A DNA stretch of 64,000 bases from Lepidodermella squamata (taxonomy: Eukaryota > Animalia > Gastrotricha): contig JBLDXI010000015.1 in the NCBI GenBank assembly GCA_047495785.1, forward strand, positions 4,836,001-4,900,000, in the 5' to 3' direction. Below are positions 19,070 through 64,000 of this stretch, one piece after another. Numbering within the stretch: position 1 is the first letter of the stretch; every line of letters starts with the position of its first letter. Both the position numbers and the translations under genes were made by a program. The notes beneath the pieces are model-generated. The model saw only the letters and a program-made list of their open reading frames with translations. It was not told the DNA's origin and made no database searches.

Positions 19070-19626
19070 AACTTGGAAGGTTTTCAACAATTTTGTTGAG
19101 ACTATGAAACATTGCTCAAGTTGTACAAATGCGCCACTGCTTATGAAATAAAACCACCGTAATTATGATTAAAACGTTGAATAAGAAAGGCTATCTAGTA
19201 TTAGGGAAGTTGGGGAAGCATTTTGCTAGTTTTAAAAACACTAAGGCAAATTGCAAAGGGTCCAATCTTGGATTTTCCCAATTTCATGTTGGCTGAAAAA
19301 ATGATTTTAATGAATAAAGCTGCTTGAAGCAATAAAGATTAGAGGGCCCGCTTCAGTATATGTTTCAGCAGATTACAAGGGTATTATTTTTCCACTTTAC
19401 CTAACCAAATAAAATTCACGCATGAAATGAAGCGCGCATACATGTGACTATATAGTCCATCCTTGAGAAAACAATAGACTTGCTTCGAATTTTGAAGGGC
19501 TGGCCGTCGTCGACGAAATTATTAATCCCGTTCTTGAGCCGACTGAACATAAAATGCCGTGGAGAAATCTGTTGGGGTGTGTTCATATTATTATTCTGTT
19601 ATAGCAGATAAATCTTTGTGAGAAAA

Positions 19627-20127
19627 ATGACTCAAGCTGTTATTGTGAACGCAGATCCCAATGCCGACGCTCATCCCTTCGATGACACAATACGTAGGCG
19701 TTCTCGAACGCTATCTGTATCCTGGTCTTCTTCCTGCAGCGAGAATGCCGACGAAGAACGACGTAATTCATCCGGTTTGGCTGACAGAAGACCTCGAGGA
19801 TTGCGGACGGATGAAGCTAGTAAAATTCTACCATCGACTGAGGAACTGCCGTCTCCTCCTGCCAAAAAGCAGCGCAAGGTCAAGATTTGGCAATTCATTA
19901 AGCGGAAGCTAAGCCACAGCAAGTCGTCTGAAACAGCTTTAGTGCAAGCGGGCTCTACTGCAACTTTTGACAAGGCCAACGCGAAGGCGCAAAACAAGGA
20001 TGACAAACCAAGGCCTCAGTCGGATTTCGGCTTTGAGAGCTTGATTTTCGAGGCGTCCGCCAACGGATACGTTGACATATTTCCGAATCATCCGATATCT
20101 GCTCAATCAAAAGCTTTGAAATTCTGA
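19627..20127 (+). CDS. Small disordered protein, GxxDI[YF] family member 1 (166 aa)
   Basis: Single ORF with ATG in AAAATG context; RRRSRTLSVSW, RRNSS, and C-terminal FESLIFEASANGYVDIF shared with five neighbours; AATAAA downstream. Confidence 0.75.
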   Translation: MTQAVIVNADPNADAHPFDDTIRRRSRTLSVSWSSSCSENADEERRNSSGLADRRPRGLRTDEASKILPSTEELPSPPAKKQRKVKIWQFIKRKLSHSKSSETALVQAGSTATFDKANAKAQNKDDKPRPQSDFGFESLIFEASANGYVDIFPNHPISAQSKALKF

Positions 20128-20534
20128 AGAGAAGCGATCCTTTGAGAGCTGATCAGCATCGAAGTTGCTCCAATTTGCCGAAAAAAACATGCCCTACATT
20201 TTATTTGACCATGCGCATTGTGCTATATGCTTTTTTGTTTTATGATCAAAACTGTTGAATAAATTATATCACAAATAGCACGCGTAAGCAGCTCATTAGA
20301 TAACTAAATCCCTAATACCCATAATATAAATATGTTAAGAGATTTTAAATAGCTCTTGTATTGTCACCTTTTAACGTGGGGTAACCATAGCTTCTGATAT
20401 TATCAGACCTGCTTTTTACATGGTTGTAAGGCCATCATCAGCAGTGTGAAATCTGGGATTTAGCAACAATTCATCGCATGTAATTTGCCGCTACCAGCGA
20501 TGCATTTGTAGAAAAACCTGAAATTTTTGTTCTG

Positions 20535-20933
20535 ATGAGCGATTTGAAGCCAGCAGATAATATTATTGAAAATGCAACCCCAACTAATGAGCGAAGTCGA
20601 TCGAACACGCTCACGGTCAGTTGGTGCCCCTCGTTGGACAACAAGGATGCTGAGGTGAGCCGCAAGCCATCGGTGATTTCCAATTATGACACGGAGAGGC
20701 AGCCCAATTTACTGCGTCACTTTCGCAACTTCCTCCGCCGGTTTTTTCAACGACCCAACTCTAGAAAAGCCTCGACGAATACACGCCACAATTCCTCCGC
20801 AAGTCAAGTTGGCGCATTTAATCCACATCAGCGATCGAAAGACTTCGAAAGATTTGTTTCGGATGTTTCAACAAATGGCTACTTGGACATCTTCCCTGAA
20901 TATCAAATTAAACAAACTTACTCGAAAACGTGA
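20535..20933 (+). CDS. Small disordered protein, GxxDI[YF] family member 2 (132 aa)
   Basis: RSRSNTLTVSW aligns with member 1; RKPS, RKAS; C-terminal FERFVSDVSTNGYLDIF. Confidence 0.75.
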   Translation: MSDLKPADNIIENATPTNERSRSNTLTVSWCPSLDNKDAEVSRKPSVISNYDTERQPNLLRHFRNFLRRFFQRPNSRKASTNTRHNSSASQVGAFNPHQRSKDFERFVSDVSTNGYLDIFPEYQIKQTYSKT

Positions 20934-21963
20934 ATGATGAATATGTAAAATTTTACCATGGGTTAAAAAGACGAGTTGACAGTCAGTAATCAACATCGCT
21001 TCCCCGAGATAACAATATTAATTGTGTCCAACAGACAAATGAATACTTACAGGTTTATACCACTTGCCAAATTTCTGATTAATTGAATGAGTACCCTACA
21101 TGAGCAACACAGCGCTTTCCTCTATATTATGGAACAACGGTGGACAAGAAGAAGAGTTTCCAACAAATGCTGGACCTTTTAGTATATCTAGGCTGAAAAA
21201 TATGCTGATCACTCACGTCGGAGAAATTCTCAACATTTACAGGCGCTGTTTTTTATCTGCGATGATTGTAATAATCCTCGCCATATCTTGATCAACACCG
21301 TCACAACCATCACTTGCGAACGACTCAATTCGGGAATTTTTCGAAGGAGTAAAGGAGTGACTTCCGCGGAAATTATAAATTATGGCTATATTTTTGAGCG
21401 CTTTCCTGTAACGATTCGGGCCAAGAAGTGTAAATGGCTCGACTTGACCTCGGGTCATAACAACATAGAGCGTCAGCTGCGCTTTGACACAAGGTCAACC
21501 TGACAGTCTTTTGACGTCTTTTGGAAGGCTGAACGCTGGGGTCAACCCTCCTTCTTAACGTTAAATATCCTGGTGGATTTTGTTAAAAACCTCATAACAC
21601 TCCTGCTAACGCGCGCAAAGGGCCACCTTTTCCTGGTAACAAATATTCTATGCTTTTTTTACCACGTGGAACTTTCTGCGCGTTCAATCTGCTACCTGTA
21701 ACAGTGCACGTTACGAACAAATGCGTCATTGGACAATCCAAGAAACAACTTTCTACAGTGTATGCACGCATTATGCACGCGGTTGACAAGATTAAAACTG
21801 GCGTGAAAGTGAGAGTGCTTGCGTCACTGCCTCGACCCCTGTCATTTGGCCACAGGTATAAAAAGTCGGCAGTTCTGCCGTCGGAACACCACCGTCTTCA
21901 GCTATACTAACAAATTTTCCTTGATTAATATTCACTGAGTTTACTTCAAACTTCAAACAAACA

Positions 21964-22629
21964 ATGCTGCCCCGTCGCAATATGGTCAAGTTCACGCTGG
22001 GTAAAATCGACCCCGAGATCGCGAAAGCAAATGAAATCATCGTGCCACCCGACTCGAAACCTACCGCAATGCCTATCAAATCAATTTTGAAGAAGGAGAA
22101 ATCCCCGGCCCAGAAGTTGCCAACACCGCTGGCAGCGTCTCTTGGCAAACAAAGCTGCCAGGCTGATTTCATGGCCCATAGGTCGGCTTTCAACATATCT
22201 GCGTCGCCAGGCAGTAAGGCTCATTGACTAGTGCGGTTACCGGGTGACGTTTCCCAGCCGGCTTCGGTCGATCGCTGGGCGTCATCCGGGTCTTCAAGCA
22301 GCGCTGTTGATAGTGACCGGAGTCCGCTGATTGAGACAGCAGATGATACACCGAAGCACTCTTTCGGACCATTGGAACCCAAGTCGCTAAACAGGCTGCT
22401 ATCCAAGTGCGAACGAAACTTGGCAAAATTGCTGAAGAAACCGTTCGGCGCGATGACACGAAGAAACGAATACAGCGAAATTGGCGGAACTGCGAAAGCT
22501 AGCCAAGCATCGAAAAGGTGCGCCAAAGCGAAAGGAATAAGGTCTTGCGCCGAAATGCCGCAAGATCTGAAATTCGAGCGGCTTATACGAGAAGCTACCA
22601 CACGGGGCTATGTTGACATTTATGCTTGA
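21964..22629 (+). CDS. GxxDI[YF] family member 3: 87-aa ORF plus in-frame extension across TGA 22225-22227 (221 aa if read through)
   Basis: TATAAAA near 21857 and ATG in ACAATG context. ORFs 21964-22227 and 22231-22629 are in the same frame, separated by TGA CTA. The extension ends FERLIREATTRGYVDIYA. Confidence 0.62.
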
Positions 22630-23114
22630 CTCTAAGATGATAACCATCATTTATTTGATAGCTATAATAAGCCTTACATTTTTTTCTCAGTTTGATTATA
22701 TATCAGTATTATTACTTGGTTTAATCTCACGAAATTCAATGTTAATTTTAGGAATGTCCTTTATCAAGTTCTCTCAGCTTCGAATAAAGTAATAATATAT
22801 TTTAAATGCGTTACATTTCTGACTTTTTGTAAATTATTTCGCAATTTTGCGTAATAAAAGCAATGTTTACTGCGATATGAGCGTTATTATAAGTAAATGG
22901 AAGGTGCTTTCTCTAGAGTGCGTACTGAACAAAGAGGTGTTTATATGGTTTTTTAGCCACGTGTTGTTTTGCACTCAGGAGCATTATATAATTTCATTTC
23001 GTGTCTTCTTATCATTTGCGTTTTGTTCCACACCTACTTCCATTCAAATATAGGCTATTAGACTTCGATCGCCCACTTTTAACAGAACAGCTTCAACTGC
23101 AAACAAACAAAAAC

Positions 23115-23531
23115 ATGGAGATGAAACCCTTGAAAAGATCGCATTCGTCATCAGCATCGGATCGAGGTATGGAGTCTTCCTCTTCAGATGCAGCAAAGGA
23201 TCGTCAGCAAACTGATAAATCTTCGAAATCGTCGTCTTCAAAGACAGCGCCTGATCACCATCAATCGGTCGATTACAGCCACCTTCCATCTTTGAACACA
23301 AATGCCTTCAAAATTGAGTACAGGAATTATTATCGCAAATATTCTCTGCCGACAATTCCAAGTTACGGTGAGCTGCAAGACCTCGAACGTGATAAGCAGA
23401 TGGCTGACGACGAAATTTCAACACGGCCTCGATGCCATACTATTCACACGGAAACCTTCGATGAAACGTACAAGAAAACACTGCAGAGTGCTACAAAAAG
23501 TGGACATGTTGACATTTACTCCATGTTTTGA
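23115..23531 (+). CDS. Small disordered protein, GxxDI[YF] family member 4 (138 aa)
   Basis: ATG in AAACATGG context; Ser-rich, KRSHS, RKYS, RPRCHT; C-terminal YKKTLQSATKSGHVDIYSMF; AATAAA downstream. Confidence 0.75.
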   Translation: MEMKPLKRSHSSSASDRGMESSSSDAAKDRQQTDKSSKSSSSKTAPDHHQSVDYSHLPSLNTNAFKIEYRNYYRKYSLPTIPSYGELQDLERDKQMADDEISTRPRCHTIHTETFDETYKKTLQSATKSGHVDIYSMF

Positions 23532-23864
23532 TATTTTTGAACCTTTCTCTTACGCAGATAGTGCATCAACTACCTGAGATAATCATCTATTATTACCTCA
23601 GGCGACATTTTTTGCATTCACATTGACGATTAATTGATGTGTTATTTATAAATAAGTTTTTAATAAAAATAAAAACCACCATTTTGCGTCATCACTCCAC
23701 AATGGGCGGCACTGCAGTGCATTTAACGTGGGGTTGCGCTTGACTGCGTTAAGAGGTTGAACGGGCTATACTGTACACAGGAGTTTCTCGTCGAGTAACT
23801 TTTCATATGTTGTGACTCGATTATTTTTTGGCGTTAAAGCATATTAATCCGGCGTTTCAGGCGA

Positions 23865-24206
23865 ATGGATAGCAAAGACGAAAAGACTACTCCACAGCCA
23901 GCTCCGATTGCCGCGAGCTTTCCCAATGCGGATGGGTACCAACAGACTATTCGACGCGTGAGCAAACTTGGCCGCAGCGATCTCGCCGATTTGAAGAAAT
24001 CAGCAAGCTGCTCTGATGCAGCCTATACGCAATTTCACAGGCAAGTGTCGACGACTGGCAGGGCCGACATAGCGGCCGAACTATCAAGTCGTCGCTTCAG
24101 TGATAGACCGAAAAAAGTACCGAGCTCCAAACCTCCGTCATTCGATGGCTTCCTCGACCGCGCGAAGAAAACTGGAAATTCAGACATTTACGCAATTCAC
24201 AAGTAG
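23865..24206 (+). CDS. Small disordered protein, GxxDI[YF] family member 5 (113 aa), with two motif copies
   Basis: RRVS, RQVS, RRFS; internal YTQFHRQVSTTGRADIA and terminal FDGFLDRAKKTGNSDIYAIHK; AATAAA downstream. Confidence 0.75.
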   Translation: MDSKDEKTTPQPAPIAASFPNADGYQQTIRRVSKLGRSDLADLKKSASCSDAAYTQFHRQVSTTGRADIAAELSSRRFSDRPKKVPSSKPPSFDGFLDRAKKTGNSDIYAIHK

Positions 24207-24518
24207 AAATGGTTCATTTATTTGCGTTTTTCTGCTGTCCTTGCTGTCTGTGAATTGGTAATAAAAGTTTTTCAAGTGCTGAATAATCTGTTTACGATGT
24301 TAAAAATAGCTAAAACACGTGATGATCCAATTAGGCCGTTAGCAGTACACAAGTTGGAAACCGAAAACTTGGCCGCTATGAATAATTAGTAAATGGCTTG
24401 AACAGCGCAGCACGACTTTCTGCATATAAGCTCAAATTTAGCCCAGATCAGTTGAACTTGTAATTATTTTTTAACACGTGAACAATCGTTCCCAGACTGC
24501 AATATAACTTCGAAGTTT

Positions 24519-24994
24519 ATGTCATCACCTGGTACGAACAAAGCCGAAACTACAGAGGCGAAAATTCCCGACAAAAAGAAAACTGGCAACCTGGTTATTC
24601 CTAATAGGCAGCGATCCACATCGCTTGCCGTCGGTGACACTAGTTATCAGTCGGTGGTCAAATTTTCCAAGGAAGTTGACCAGGTAAGAAATGATATATA
24701 AGCTTGGGAATATTTTTGACCTCGTACATTTTTTATATGAAGCTGATGGAACGTAAAAAGAACGAACTCCGAAGAGATTCTGTTGTCAGCACCAGCTCTA
24801 TTCAGTCGATAAGTCGCGATACGGTTGATGCTCGATACCGCCGGACGTCAATTGTTGCGCTAATGAACGGCAATTCGGACATTCGCCATTCGGTAGCAAA
24901 CATTGAGCCGACTTTGGTCGATTTTCAATACGAGAAGGCCATCAAGAAGGCCAAGGACATTGGGCATACAGACATCTACGCTATGGGCTATTGA
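24519..24994 (+). CDS. Small disordered protein, GxxDI[YF] family member 6 (138 aa, 2 exons)
   Basis: Phase-0 intron 24684-24742 (CAG|GTAAGA...TGAAG|CTG) joins the two ORFs in frame; RQRSTS, RRDS, RRTS; C-terminal YEKAIKKAKDIGHTDIYAMGY. Confidence 0.75.
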
Positions 24995-25463
24995 CAAGAG
25001 ATTGCCATTTTATTATTATTTTTTTTATGATATAGCTAATCACAGTTTTACTGACTAGTTATGATACCCGAATTTTGAGACATGCTCGGTGAATTAACAA
25101 AATAAAATTCCTGATTTTTTCTTAAAAAAAGGTTCTCATCTTACCATACTAAAAGGCGAAGCACAGGGTCAAAGGGATAAGAATTCGAAGGTTTGGGTGA
25201 AACACGCTTCGACTGTCACAGCACGCGACAGGCACGCGCCCAGACTCAGCTGAGAAATAATACGATTTGAAATTTCGAGGCTACAAAGCCTGTTTCAACT
25301 ATTATTCCCCCTCGGCCCATCATTTCACATTGGATACTGCTAATTTTCTGAATTTTCGATAACTGGTTCAAATGTCTTTTTTTTATTTAATATCAGTTGT
25401 TCCCTTTCGGGCAGCAGATTTTTAGGAATAGAAAATTAAAGTAAGACATAAATAATCCTCGAA

Positions 25464-50925: not shown

Positions 50926-53910
50926 ATGCCTAATAATACTCCGCTGTTTGCACCAAGCTTCCTCGATGGCTTTCGCGTCGAAACATCCGTTTATGGGCAA
51001 AATCTCCCAGCCACTTGTTATGGTGAGTTCGAACAGCAGACATTGAAGCCAGGCAATCAATCACTTGTCGAAAATCCACTGATCACCGAGCCTGACGGTC
51101 GTCAGCTCAGCTACAAAAAGCTGAGGGAAATGATCCACGGATTTGCGGTCGCATTCGAAAAACTAGGCTTGCCTCGATCAAGTCATACTGTAGCTGTTTT
51201 TCTTCCGCCAAGCGTAGCAAGAATCGCCACGTTTTTATCATTGAATTACATGGGCTTTACGCAAGTTCCACTCGATGTGACCCAGCCGTCGGATTTGAAA
51301 AAGTACATCCTAGAGCATAGCAAAGCTCAAATCATTATTACGGTAAGAATTGCCATGATTAAGACATCCGTATCCAAGCTTTTGTCTGAACCGAAAATAA
51401 TATAGAGTGAAGATCGAAAGCAAAGTTTGCTGGAGGAAACGGGCTGGAAATTGGCGACTATTGTTATTGATCGCGATTGCGTCGTCGAATCGTGTTGCGG
51501 TGAATTTTCCTCTTCTGGCCAGGACGAAGTGGTGATTTCAAATACTGATGATAAGTGGCCAGCTTTGACGTTGTACACGAGTGGAAGCACCGGCATTCCG
51601 AAAGGCGTCGCCTTATCAAACTCAAATCTTCTGAATCGTCTCCGGTGGCAATGGGCTGAGCTGCCATTTTCCGAGGATGGCTCGGATGTTTGCCTAGCGA
51701 GGACGAATCCGCTTTTCATTGACAGCTACACTGAAATACTGGGTGCTGTTCTTCGTCTCCAGCGACTTGTGATCCTAGATCTTAATAGTGGCAGCAAACA
51801 CACCAGCGTCGCCGATTTCATAGCTGATGCCGTTCAAGCTCATGACGTCACTCGTCTTATCCTGGTGCCATCGTTACTGAAAGCTCTTCTTGAGCTTCCT
51901 GATGCAGCTGCAAAATTAGCGACTTTGCGACTAGTTGTCAGCAGTGGCGAGGCTTTACCATCAGATTTGGCAAAATCATTTTTTCGAACACTTTCGTCGA
52001 TTAAAGGAGGCCAGCCCCGCCTAGCGAACTTTTACGGTTCAACCGAAGTTACGGGCGATGTGACTGCGTCAATCTTCGCCAGCGAGGCTGACGTAACAGC
52101 TCGCACAGTAGACGGCTTTCTGTCAATAGGTCGGCCGGTTCACAACACCACGGTTTACGTACTTGACGACGAATTCAACATGCTGCCTTTCGGTGAAACT
52201 GGCAACATCTACGTATCTGGGGAGAACGTGTGCATCGGATTCGTAGGTGATTCTGGAAGCTACTTCGATCGGTTCCGTCGAAAGCCTGACTATATGAGCC
52301 ATCTAGGCTGGGGCGATAGGTTGATCAGCATGGGCGATCTTGGTCGTGTCGCTCCAGGTGGAGAATTGAGTACGTTGATGCGCGCTTTTTATTAAGAAAT
52401 ATGTATAGTTTCCTACCTAGTTTATTGTGGTCGAAGCGACTCGATCGTGAAAATTCGCGGAAATCGTGTATCGACAATTAGCGTTGAGAATGCTCTCAAA
52501 CAGATTCTTGATACGATAATGCGCGAAAAACCGCCGGCAGCCAAGTTTACGCCCCATTGCCGCGTTATTGCTGTCGAAAGCAAATCAAATGCTACATGTC
52601 GGCTGGCTGGCTTCTACGAAACCTGGCCTGAAGCTCCAGTTTGTCTTCGTCCAGATAACATTCGAAACCGATTAGCAAGGTTCTTGGCGTCCTACGCTGT
52701 GCCTGAATTGCTATTTCCGTTTGAGCTCGGCAAGTTCCCCATTCAACCAGCTACAGGCAAGACTGACCAGCGAGCTCTAAAAGCAATGGCGGCAGAACAA
52801 GCTAATGAAGGCTTACTTGAAGATTCAGATCTTGCGCTACTCAAGGCGAACAACGACGATCTACAATCAGCGTTGGAAATTGTCCGCGCTGTCGCTGCAC
52901 ATACCCTAGCTGTGCCGGTCAGCAAGATCGTAATGGAAGCTACTTTCTTCAATCAAGGCGGCAATTCGCTGTCTGTAATTCGGGCTGTAATCGCGCTGAA
53001 GAAAATCGGTTTCGAGAACGCTACTGCCGACATGCTTCTTTCGCGGAAGAACACCTTGGCGGATGCCGCAAAACGTTTGATTGCGAAGCATCAACTCAAA
53101 CAAGAAGAATGGGCGAAACCAGACTGGTTGGACTTTGTCAGCATCCGGAACCTGACAGAGAGTCAAACGAACCAGGTGAAAGAAGGGTTGGTGCGTGCCT
53201 TTATGTCCAAAGAGCAGCTGGTTACTTATTTCCATCTTGACAAAGAAGGTAATTTTCAATTCTTCATCTGTTGCCTATATGGTTCCCATTCAAATGTTGC
53301 ACGCTTGTAGTTCTTATGCGACACATTCAAGCCACGTGGCGTACATACATTGAATCCGGTGAAATATCATTCGCTGTAATTGACCGCCGATTGCCTGGAG
53401 ATGCCGCTGTGGTTGGATGCAATTTGAACGCTGATTTAACTGTAGAGGACAGTATTGATGACTGGAAAGGTATGGAGCCGATTTGTTGCATCTTGGAAGC
53501 AACAGATAAGCCTGCATTCGAGAAAATAACAAGATTATTCGCAATCGATGGCGCAATTCCCAAGGGAGTGGTAGTGAGCAACCGAGTGCTTTACGTTGAC
53601 TCGAAATGTTCTCCTGATGATGCCTCGGAGGCTTTCTCCGGATTGGAGCAAGAGCTAATTAAAAGGTGTCGTAAAGATGGTTACAAAATGATTACAGCCG
53701 TCAACACTGCCGCAGCAACCCAGGTAATGTTGCTACAATTATTTCGTATTTTTATGTCTCCAATTTTCGCAGGTGATGGAGCGCGATATTCTTGGTTACG
53801 TGGATGAGAACCAGTTGTACCCCAAGCAATTTCAAACCCCTGATGGCAAGTTCCACTTCAGCGATGCCCCAGATGACTATGCAATTCATTCCATGACCCT
53901 ACAACTATGA
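50926..53910 (+). CDS. Ebony-like single-module NRPS (beta-alanyl-amine synthetase type: A, T and amine-selecting domains), copy 1, 5 exons
   Basis: LYTSGSTGIPKGV, LNRLRWQWAELPF, FIDSYTEI, VTRLILVPSLL, VSSGEAL, NFYGSTEVTGD, MGDLG, KIRGNRV, TGKTD, carrier-protein FFNQGGNSL, and an AANAT-like C-terminal domain (AVNTAAATQ); no condensation domain. Confidence 0.88.
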
Positions 53911-61236: not shown

Positions 61237-64000
61237 ATGCCTAATAATACTCCGTTATTTGCACCAAGCTTCCTGGATGGCTTTCGCGTCGAACGATCCG
61301 TTAATGGAGAAAATCTCTCAGCCACTTGTTATGGTGAGTTCGAACAGCAGGCTTCGAAGCAAGGCAATCAATCACTTGTCGAAAATCCACTGATCACCGA
61401 GCCTGACGGTCGTCAGCTCAGCTACAAAAAGCTGAGGGAAATGATCCACGGATTTGCGGTCGCATTCGAAAAACTAGGCTTGCCTCGATCAAGTCATACT
61501 GTAGCTGTTTTTCTTCCGCCAAGCGTAGCAAGAATCGCCACGTTTTTATCATTGAATTACATGGGCTTTACGCAAGTTCCACTCGATGTGACCCAGCCGT
61601 CGGATTTGAAAAAGTACATCCTAGAGCATAGCAAAGCTCAAATCATTATTACGGTAAGAATTGCCATGATTAAGACATCCGTATCCAAGCTTTTGTCTGA
61701 ACCGAAAATAATATAGAGTGAAGATCGAAAGCAAAGTTTGCTGGAGGAAACGGGCTGGAAATTGGCGACTATTGTTATTGATCGCGATTGCGTCGTCGAA
61801 TCGTGTTGCGGTGAATTTTCCTCTTCTGGCCAGGACGAAGTGGTGATTTCAAATACTGATGATAAGTGGCCAGCTTTGACGTTGTACACGAGTGGAAGCA
61901 CCGGCATTCCGAAAGGCGTCGCCTTATCAAACTCAAATCTTCTGAATCGTCTCCGGTGGCAATGGGCTGAGCTGCCATTTTCCGAAGATGGCTCAGATGT
62001 TTGCCTAGCGAGAACGAATCCGCTTTTCATTGACAGCTACACTGAAATACTGGGTGCCGTTCTTCGTCTTCAGCGGCTTGTGATCCTAGATCTTAATAGT
62101 GGCAGCAAACACACAAGCGTCCCCGATTTCATAGCTGGTGCCGTTCAAGCTCATGAAGTCACGCGTCTTATCCCGGTGCCATCATTACTCAAAGCTCTTC
62201 TTGAGCTTCCTGATGCAGCTGCAAAATTAGCGACTTTGCGACTAGTTGTCAGCAGTGGCGAGGCTTTACCTTCAGAATTGGCAAAATCCTTTTTTCGAAC
62301 ACTTTCGTCGATTAAAGGAGGCCAGCCGCGCCTAGCGAATTTTTACGGTTCAACCGAAGTTACGGGCGATGTAACTGCGTCAATCTTCGCCAGCGAGGCT
62401 GACGTAACAGCTCGCACTGTCGACGGTTTTCTGTCAATAGGTCGGCCGGTTCACAACACAACGGTTTACGTATTGGACGACGAATTCAACATGCTGCCTT
62501 TCGGTGAAACTGGCAACATCTACGTATCTGGGGAGAACGTGTGCATCGGATTCGTAGGTGATTCTGGAAGTTACTCCGATCGGTTCCGTCGAAAGCCTGA
62601 CTATATGAGCCATCTAGGCTGGGGCGATAGGTTGATCAGCATGGGCGACCTCGGTCGCATCGTTCCAGGTGGAGAATTGTGTACGTTGATGCGCGCTTTT
62701 TATTAAGAAATATGTATAGTTTCCTACCTAGTTTATTGTGGTCGAAGCGACTCGATCGTGAAAATACGCGGAAATCGGGTATCGACAATTAGCGTAGAGA
62801 ATGCTCTCAAAACGATTCTTCATACGATAATGCGCGAAAAACCGCCGGCAGCCAAGTTTACACCCCATTGCCGCGTTATTGCTGTCGAAAGCAAATCAAA
62901 TGCTACATGTCGGCTGGCTGGCTTCTACGAAACCTGGCCTGAGGCGGCAGTTTGTCTTCGTCCAGATAACATTCGAAACCGATTATCACGGTTCCTGGCA
63001 TCTTACGCTGTGCCTGAATTGCTATTTCCGATTGAGCTTGGCAAGTTCCCCATTCAACCAGCTACAGGCAAGACTGACCAGCGAGCTCTAAAAGCAATGG
63101 CGGCAGAACAAAGTAACGAAGCTTTGATTGAAGATTCAGATCTTGCGCTACTCAAGGCGAACAACGACGATCTACAATCATCGTTGGAAATTGTCCGCGC
63201 TGTTGCTGCACATACCCTAGCTGTGCCGGTCAGGAAGGTCGTTATGGAAGCGACATTCTTCAATCAAGGCGGCAATTCGCTGTCTGTAATTCGGGCTGTA
63301 ATTGCGCTGAAGAAAATCGGCTTCGAGAACGCTACTGCCGACATGCTTCTTTCGCGTAACAACACGTTGGCGGATGTTGCAAAACTTTTAATTGCGAAGC
63401 ATCAAGTCAAACAAGAAGAATGGGCGAAACCAGACTGGCTGGACCTTGTAAGCATCCAGGACCTGACAGAGAGTCAAACGAACCAGGTGAAAGAAGGGCT
63501 GGTGCATGCCTTTATCTCTAATGAGCCGCTGGCTGTTTATTTTCATGTTGACAAAGAAGGTAATTTCAATTTTTTATCTTTTATTTTGTTCTCACTCGCA
63601 TTTTGCATGCTTCAAGTTCTTATGCGACATGTTAACGCTACGTGGCGTATATGCGTTGAATCCGGTGAACTTTCATTCGCTGCAATCGACCTCCGATTGT
63701 CTGGAGATGCCGCTGTAATTGGATGCAATTTGAACGCCGATTTAACTGTAGAGGACAGTATTGATAACTGGAAGGGAATTGAGCCTATTTGTTGCATCTT
63801 GGGAGAAACAGATAAGCCTGCATTCGACAAAATAACAAGATTATTCGCAGTCGATGGCGCAATTCCCAAGGGAGTGGTAGTGAACAACCGAATGCTTTAT
63901 GTTGACTCGAAATGTTCCTCTCATGATGCCTCGGAGGTTTTTTCCGGATTGGAGCACGAGCTGATTAAAAGGAGCCGTAAACAAGGTTACAAAATGATCA
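61237..64000 (+). CDS. Ebony-like NRPS, copy 2 (3' end beyond the window)
   Basis: Colinear with copy 1 at an offset of 10311 bp, same intron positions and the same A and T motifs; no stop or frameshift noticed. Confidence 0.87.

Follow-up and report, generated by a model that had tools for sequence, protein, structure and literature searches.

A candidate readthrough UGA followed by a conserved stem-loop in a tandem gene family of the gastrotrich Lepidodermella squamata

The member 3 gene and its family

The window analysed here is a stretch of 64,000 nucleotides of the Lepidodermella squamata genome (GenBank assembly GCA_047495785.1, contig JBLDXI010000015.1, positions 4,836,001 to 4,900,000), read on the forward strand, and positions given without a contig name refer to it. 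It contains six tandem small genes with a common G-x-x-D-I-[YF] ending, the third of which (member 3) is described in this report. A homeobox gene and spliced genes with short introns also lie within the window, as does a tandem gene duplicate made of near-identical coding stretches about 10.3 kb apart (51256-51369 and 61567-61680; 51898-51981 and 62209-62292). The features of member 3 are as follows.

21857..21864, + strand: putative TATA-like box TATAAAAA, recognised from the sequence, inside a promoter block common to the paralogue on contig C55
21964..22224, + strand: ORF1, 87 codons, beginning at the first ATG after the TATA-like box
22225..22227, + strand: in-frame UGA, a candidate leaky stop, present in DNA and cDNA contigs and at the same codon in the paralogue
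22228..22231, + strand: CUAG context directly 3' of the UGA; CUA is kept, and the fourth position is occupied by G in the window and by U in the paralogue
22228..22626, + strand: candidate readthrough extension, 133 sense codons in the ORF1 frame, carrying features shared with the tandem family
22240..22289, + strand: stem-loop beginning 12 nt past the UGA, with a 12-bp basal stem
22573..22626, + strand: C-terminal family motif FERLIREATTRGYVDIYA, the last 18 residues of the extension
22627..22629, + strand: second stop, TGA, where the candidate long isoform would end; kept in the paralogue
22853-22858, + strand: AATAAA signal, recognised from the sequence, with poly(A) addition after 22875 marked by a 22-A loose end in cDNA run X2

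An earlier, sequence-only reading of this DNA had described the ATG at 21964, the 87 codons that follow it, the TGA at 22225-22227, the CTAG and the 133 further sense codons ending in the family motif, and our analysis reproduced both the coordinates and the content. Between 22228 and 22626 the ORF1 frame is open, and the other two frames contain 7 and 8 stops; the open frame past the UGA exceeds chance. In a DNA alignment of member 3 with its paralogue, the promoter block ACAGGTAT(A)AAAAGTCGGCAGT is kept in both copies. At the other end of the transcript, cDNA run X2 has a poly(A) tail of 22 A that begins right behind 22875, at a distance of 17 nt from the AATAAA. Member 3 has no introns, spans about 1 kb and is highly expressed. 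The word depth in X2 was 650-1800 for member 3 (21983-22875) and 1-110 for its five sister genes; at 10 to 100 times the depth of its neighbours, it was by far the most strongly expressed of the six genes in this sample. Six heterozygous SNPs were found within 60 bp of ORF1 (21996-22056); in DNA run X1 they have roughly half the depth, and they occur in X2 as well. Three of them are synonymous, and the other three, at 22040, 22042 and 22044, turn an adjacent Ile-Val into Thr-Leu. Downstream of this cluster there are zero variants for the next 1 kb, and both alleles are expressed.

The C-terminal half of the extension matched two neighbouring genes of the array by tblastn (19945-20082, E 4e-4; 20709-20894, E 1e-3), and shorter matches to the motif were found at 23460, 24015 and 24920. 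Member 6 has a 59-nt AT-rich GT..AG intron with a T tract (24682-24742), which is spliced in run X2. The coding sequence of member 6 therefore begins upstream of the ORF listed at 24704, and a view of the family based on ORFs alone is incomplete.

Word searches of protein databases found no relatives of the 87-aa piece encoded by ORF1 or of the 133-aa piece behind it. A profile built from the two N-terminal pieces had no match in a full HMMER search of 1.84 billion representatives, Pfam at E values up to 10 gave no match for the 87-aa piece, the 133-aa piece or members 1 and 2, and the ESM Atlas gave no usable match for the N-terminal piece. The omega (dN/dS) of ORF1 against the paralogue is 0.14, with a dS of 0.78. 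As judged from these comparisons, ORF1 is an orphan N-terminal module that is under strong purifying selection. Two short segments of it, RRNMVKFT (21973-21993) and KSILK (22081-22092), resemble the RVxF and SILK motifs by which partners dock to protein phosphatase 1 (PP1), as in the N-termini of inhibitor-1 and DARPP-32, and members 1 and 2 carry an SVSW close to their N-termini. We rejected a PP1-binding reading of ORF1: SILK is not kept in the paralogue, RVxF is not strictly matched, and Pfam gave it no support.

The in-frame stop in DNA, in cDNA and in a second gene copy

Four sequencing runs (X1-X4) were aligned to positions 19500-25200 of the window and compared as assembled contigs, from which rare variants drop out. 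X1 behaves as DNA, with an even depth of about 90-130, and its contig 22057-23054 contains the TGA with 0 differences and 0 gaps at full two-allele depth. X2 was recognised as cDNA by its poly(A) tails, the remains of a template-switch adaptor, the spliced member 6 intron and zero depth in the intergenic stretch 21219-21791. Its contig 22093-22418, at a depth of about 650 and again with 0 differences and 0 gaps, crosses the UGA and every candidate intron. This contig is unspliced across the UGA, and the UGA is therefore present in the mature mRNA. X1 and X2, both of which have the TGA at full depth, come from two studies. Of the other runs, X3 yielded one contig of low depth (22160-22367, depth 4.8), which has 1 mismatch and lacks 3 letters somewhere within it, and nothing in X4 aligned to 19500-25200 at 90% likeness. 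The sequence-only reading had allowed that the reads might contain a sense codon or a splice at this point; the DNA contig of X1 and the cDNA contig of X2 carry the TGA and neither of these.

The same reading had found no frame-preserving GT-AG intron of normal size over the stop: among its candidates of 18, 44, 50 and 76 nt, only the implausibly short one of 18 nt keeps the frame. In the cDNA, no splice joint over the UGA was listed at a depth of about 650, although splicing of member 6's 59-nt intron did show up in this run. The list of candidates has to be corrected, since in addition to the 18-nt pair there are further in-frame GT-AG pairs over the UGA, among them 22203-22298 (96 nt), 22182-22298 (117 nt), 22214-22339 (126 nt) and 22214-22342 (129 nt). 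A rival reading is that a minority of the transcripts lose the UGA through an unusual in-frame intron (22214-22339, for example) or have it recoded to UGG by A-to-I editing. Both copies of the gene carry a good GTAAG donor at 22214, in-frame acceptors lie at 22231, 22339 and 22342, and rare variants of this kind would be dropped by the contigs. However, besides the lack of a joint in X2, the candidate introns have 52% GC whereas the real intron nearby is rich in AT and contains a T tract. The paralogue has lost the acceptor at 22339/22342 by a deletion, and the cDNA contig has no A>G change at 22227. We consider removal or recoding of the UGA to be very unlikely.

A single other copy of member 3 was found in the animal's own genome (121 Mb), at G000:C55:551784-552470, with 82% nucleotide identity. 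It is a dispersed duplicate of member 3 alone, extending from the promoter block through the final stop; no neighbours were copied with it, so that it does not belong to a homoeologous block. The N-terminal ORFs of the two copies have 79% protein identity, and their 3' UTRs are unrelated in a DNA alignment. At exactly the same codon as the TGA-CTA-G of the window, the paralogue has TGA-CTA-T. The 60 bases around the UGA are 87-90% identical between the copies, against 57-70% further downstream.

The dS between the two copies is about 0.5-0.8. Because the UGA was kept over this distance, the stop predates substantial divergence and can be put down neither to an assembly error nor to a nonsense allele of recent origin. 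Orthologues with a sense codon at this position had been named as the mark of a recent nonsense allele; in the sole relative at hand, the C55 paralogue, TGA-CTA is kept, so that no recent nonsense allele is indicated. The TGA in X1, X2 and the paralogue and the omega of ORF1 all speak against a recent nonsense allele, an assembly error or a pseudogene.

Three indels separate the extensions of the two copies. Two of them (+15 and -3) are in frame. In the third, the paralogue has gained 2 bases (AT; G000:C55:552400-552401; L007:2117-2118), an insertion that shifts its otherwise well-conserved motif out of frame. The divergence of the motif is rich in synonymous changes, which shows that the motif was read in the ORF frame for most of its history and that the insertion is either a recent disabling change or an assembly error. 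The C55 copy may be dying or misassembled.

The stem-loop and the coding character of the extension

From 12 nt behind the stop, the RNA is predicted to fold into a stable stem-loop in both copies. In the window (22240-22289) it has a dG of -31.5 kcal/mol and a z score of -5.3 and makes up 82% of the ensemble; in the paralogue (L007:1780-1844) the dG is -31.3 kcal/mol and the z score -5.8, both z scores being computed against 200 shuffles. The consensus basal stem comprises 12 bp, 22240-22251 pairing with 22278-22289, and in the window the upper helix is capped by a UUCG loop. There are three one-sided changes in the basal stem between the copies, and pairing is maintained in all of them (G.U/A-U, U.G/C-G and U.G/U-A); since two sequences were compared, strong covariation with double compensatory changes is absent. 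In the upper part, the two copies are made unlike by 15 extra bases in the paralogue, and the stability is equal nonetheless. Codons 1-22 of the extension have an omega of 1.5 and a dS of 0.22, against a dS of 0.67 downstream. The amino acids encoded here thus vary freely while dS is low, suggesting that the constraint on this segment acts on the RNA and not on the protein.

A hairpin behind a UGA also recalls the elements that redefine UGA as selenocysteine, and the genome contains three tRNA-Sec genes above the Rfam cut-off (70.5 bits, on C24). A selenocysteine codon is nevertheless extremely unlikely here. No Rfam SECIS element was found in 21800-23000 at E values up to 10, with a SECIS model that matched nothing anywhere in this genome and may thus have little power in it, and the 3' UTR (22630-22900) has no AUGA...AA...GA core. 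Moreover, the 3' UTRs of the two copies are unrelated, and no Cys or redox motif is found near the site. In the same tRNA search, more than 40 loci (on C15, C29 and other contigs) had the same sub-threshold tRNA-Sec score of 41.7 bits over 81 nt; they probably represent either a tRNA-derived repeat or a long-arm tRNA gene in many copies, clustered on C15 and C29.

Taken in full, the extension is under weak constraint (omega 0.54, P 0.04) when compared with a null of 0.84 +/- 0.21 obtained by random placement of the same 110 changes. Behind the codons of the hairpin the signal is clearer: codons 23-133 have an omega of 0.44 (P 0.013), and the C-terminal motif, read in the shifted frame of the paralogue, has one of 0.19 (P 0.007). 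For codons 23-75, from the hairpin to the first in-frame ATG, omega is 0.46, which is not significant alone (P 0.12). The block EPKSLNRLLSKCE encodes the same protein in both copies, and its base differences, as read by eye from the alignment, are all synonymous. The chance that the extension would acquire no new stop under neutral change is 0.02-0.03. ORF1 and the extension each have a GC of 0.52, which drops to 0.26 only in the 3' UTR past 22629. Thirteen long ORFs of the window served to train a codon-usage score, which was +0.18 bits per codon for ORF1, +0.15 for the extension and +0.16 for the first 75 codons of the extension, before any AUG, and it was negative in the off-frames and in the 3' UTR. 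In this comparison, which involves one sequence with a late +2 frameshift, the downstream frame has the signature of protein-coding constraint while the stop is kept.

These figures bear on the simplest alternative, namely that the UGA is a plain terminator. The 87-residue protein would then be the only product, the extension would be the slowly decaying relic of a family gene that has been 3' UTR since before the duplication, and the hairpin would serve the stability or localisation of the UTR. Such a history would fit the constraint on ORF1 (0.14) being far above that on the extension (0.54), the weak third-position bias of the differences in the extension (32/34/44 by codon position) and the paralogue motif lying out of frame. 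It would not explain, however, why both copies remained open at the low probability given above, why omega is reduced in codons 23-133 and in the motif, or why the +15 and -3 indels keep the frame. Coding-type GC and codon usage also persist despite a dS of about 0.6, and the leaky CUA context is conserved. On balance, we regard plain termination as unlikely.

The downstream ORF could also be translated independently of ORF1, either by reinitiation at GUG/UUG or from an internal AUG (22453) reached by leaky scanning or carried by a shorter transcript. A near-cognate GUG in the window, UUG in the paralogue, lies one codon past the stop (+4 to +6), each copy has one in-frame AUG before the motif, the dN/dS before the AUG is not significant, and the 3' half has about twice the cDNA depth. 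This last bias, however, is expected of oligo-dT cDNA, and reinitiation after an 87-codon ORF is inefficient in eukaryotes. Independent translation would not need a frame shared with ORF1 and open in both copies, and the hairpin lies downstream of the stop, as in a readthrough arrangement, and not upstream as does the element of calicivirus-type reinitiation. No in-frame AUG of the extension is conserved between the copies, the two lying at different places. The sequence-only reading had named a separate transcript from the ATG of the window extension (22453, MTRRNEY) as a result that would speak against readthrough; this ATG is not kept in the paralogue, and the stretch preceding it has coding-type codon usage, with a dN/dS at P 0.12. 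Two tryptic peptides of the extension, LPGDVSQPASVDR and WASSGSSSSAVDSDR, sit before any AUG. We judge independent translation to be quite improbable.

Proposed readthrough and its relation to known systems

The conserved UGA-CUA, the hairpin and the coding signatures behind the stop support the proposal of the sequence-only reading that programmed readthrough yields a short isoform without the motif and a 221-residue isoform with it. Programmed readthrough of the UGA to give 87-residue and 221-residue isoforms is the best-supported explanation of the locus, and we consider it probable. The mRNA of member 3 would then hold two ORFs in one frame with a single UGA between them. Most ribosomes probably terminate at the UGA and release the 87-residue protein, whereas a fraction may decode the UGA with a near-cognate tRNA, aided by the leaky UGA-CUA(G) context and by the stable stem-loop 12 nt downstream. 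Ribosomes that read through would continue for 133 codons and produce a 221-residue protein, in which the orphan N-terminal module would be joined to the family body and its C-terminal G-Y-V-D-I-Y motif. That ribosomes pass the UGA, how often they do so and what either isoform does are matters of inference.

If confirmed, member 3 would be a clear cellular example of a virus-type readthrough signal consisting of UGA-CUA and a 3' stem-loop. Instead of a short tail, the signal would govern the larger part of the protein, the ancestral one (133 residues), behind an 87-residue head, and a lineage-specific ORF could accordingly become fused to an older gene through a leaky stop. The cassette of about 70 nt at 22225-22289 would then suit reporter tests of the cooperation between stop context and hairpin in an invertebrate. 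For annotators of this genome, it would mean that some in-frame UGAs with a hairpin behind them are not marks of pseudogenes.

A similar layout was observed elsewhere in the genome, in a candidate eRF1-like gene, diverged in sequence, with Pfam matches to eRF1_2 and eRF1_3 (G000:C21:391787-391848; L018:1729-1790). It has one in-frame TGA at 391787, followed by CTG, and a hairpin 13 nt past the TGA (dG -19.9, z -2.7), arranged as in member 3. A second apparent TGA in this gene falls inside a GTAAGA...AG intron. One may speculate that in member 3 a family member without its own start codon came to lie downstream of a new 87-codon ORF, with the virus-like UGA-CUA and hairpin as the coupling between them, that this module (UGA-C, a stable hairpin and between them a spacer of about 12-13 nt) also sits in the eRF1-like gene, and that this animal lineage uses hairpin-assisted UGA readthrough routinely for two-part proteins, perhaps in connection with a diverged copy of the release factor. 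Taken as one joint claim, this is a long shot; if true, hairpin-assisted UGA readthrough would be a routine way to build or regulate two-part proteins in the lineage.

Among cellular genes, the readthrough genes of insects are marked by conserved in-frame stops with a preference for UGA-C and by extensions that evolve faster than the main ORF. They are mostly long, conserved and often neuronal, with evidence from many species. Member 3 shares with these genes a conserved in-frame UGA-C and an extension that evolves faster than ORF1. Unlike them, it is an orphan gene, compared with its paralogue alone. The insect genes were found by comparative genomics in Drosophila and Anopheles (Jungreis et al. 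2016, PMC5100048).

Viral type II signals consist of UGA-CGG or UGA-CUA and an extended stem-loop placed some 8 nt 3' of the stop, and occur in alphaviruses, coltiviruses and tobraviruses (Firth and Brierley 2012, PMC3542737). Member 3 likewise has a UGA, a CUA directly after it and a long stable stem-loop past a short spacer. At the level of sequence, it carries the elements of a type II readthrough signal, with a spacer of 12 nt and a predicted role for the stem. As in the viral replicases, a large part of the protein is encoded behind the stop; this part is functional in the viruses, and its function in member 3 is putative. Unlike the viral signals, that of member 3 lies in a cellular animal gene, and its spacer is longer than the typical 8 nt or so.

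In animal cells, UGA-CUAG drives 1.5-31% readthrough, and UGA-CUA alone about 1.5% (PMC4132726). Vertebrate genes with UGA-CUAG readthrough include OPRL1, OPRK1, AQP4, MAPK10 and MDH1 (Loughran et al. 2014, PMC4132726). Member 3 has the same seven-base signal as these genes, with its first six bases kept between homologues, and as in the vertebrate genes the conservation just past its stop is seen in the nucleotides, not in the amino acids. The vertebrate extensions have a short length of 13-30 residues, and for most of them about 12 nt of 3' context is enough, whereas the extension of member 3 has 133 residues and is accompanied by a hairpin. Member 3 is unlike most cellular cases in that its candidate extension is longer than its 87-residue main ORF and holds the ancestral body of the family.
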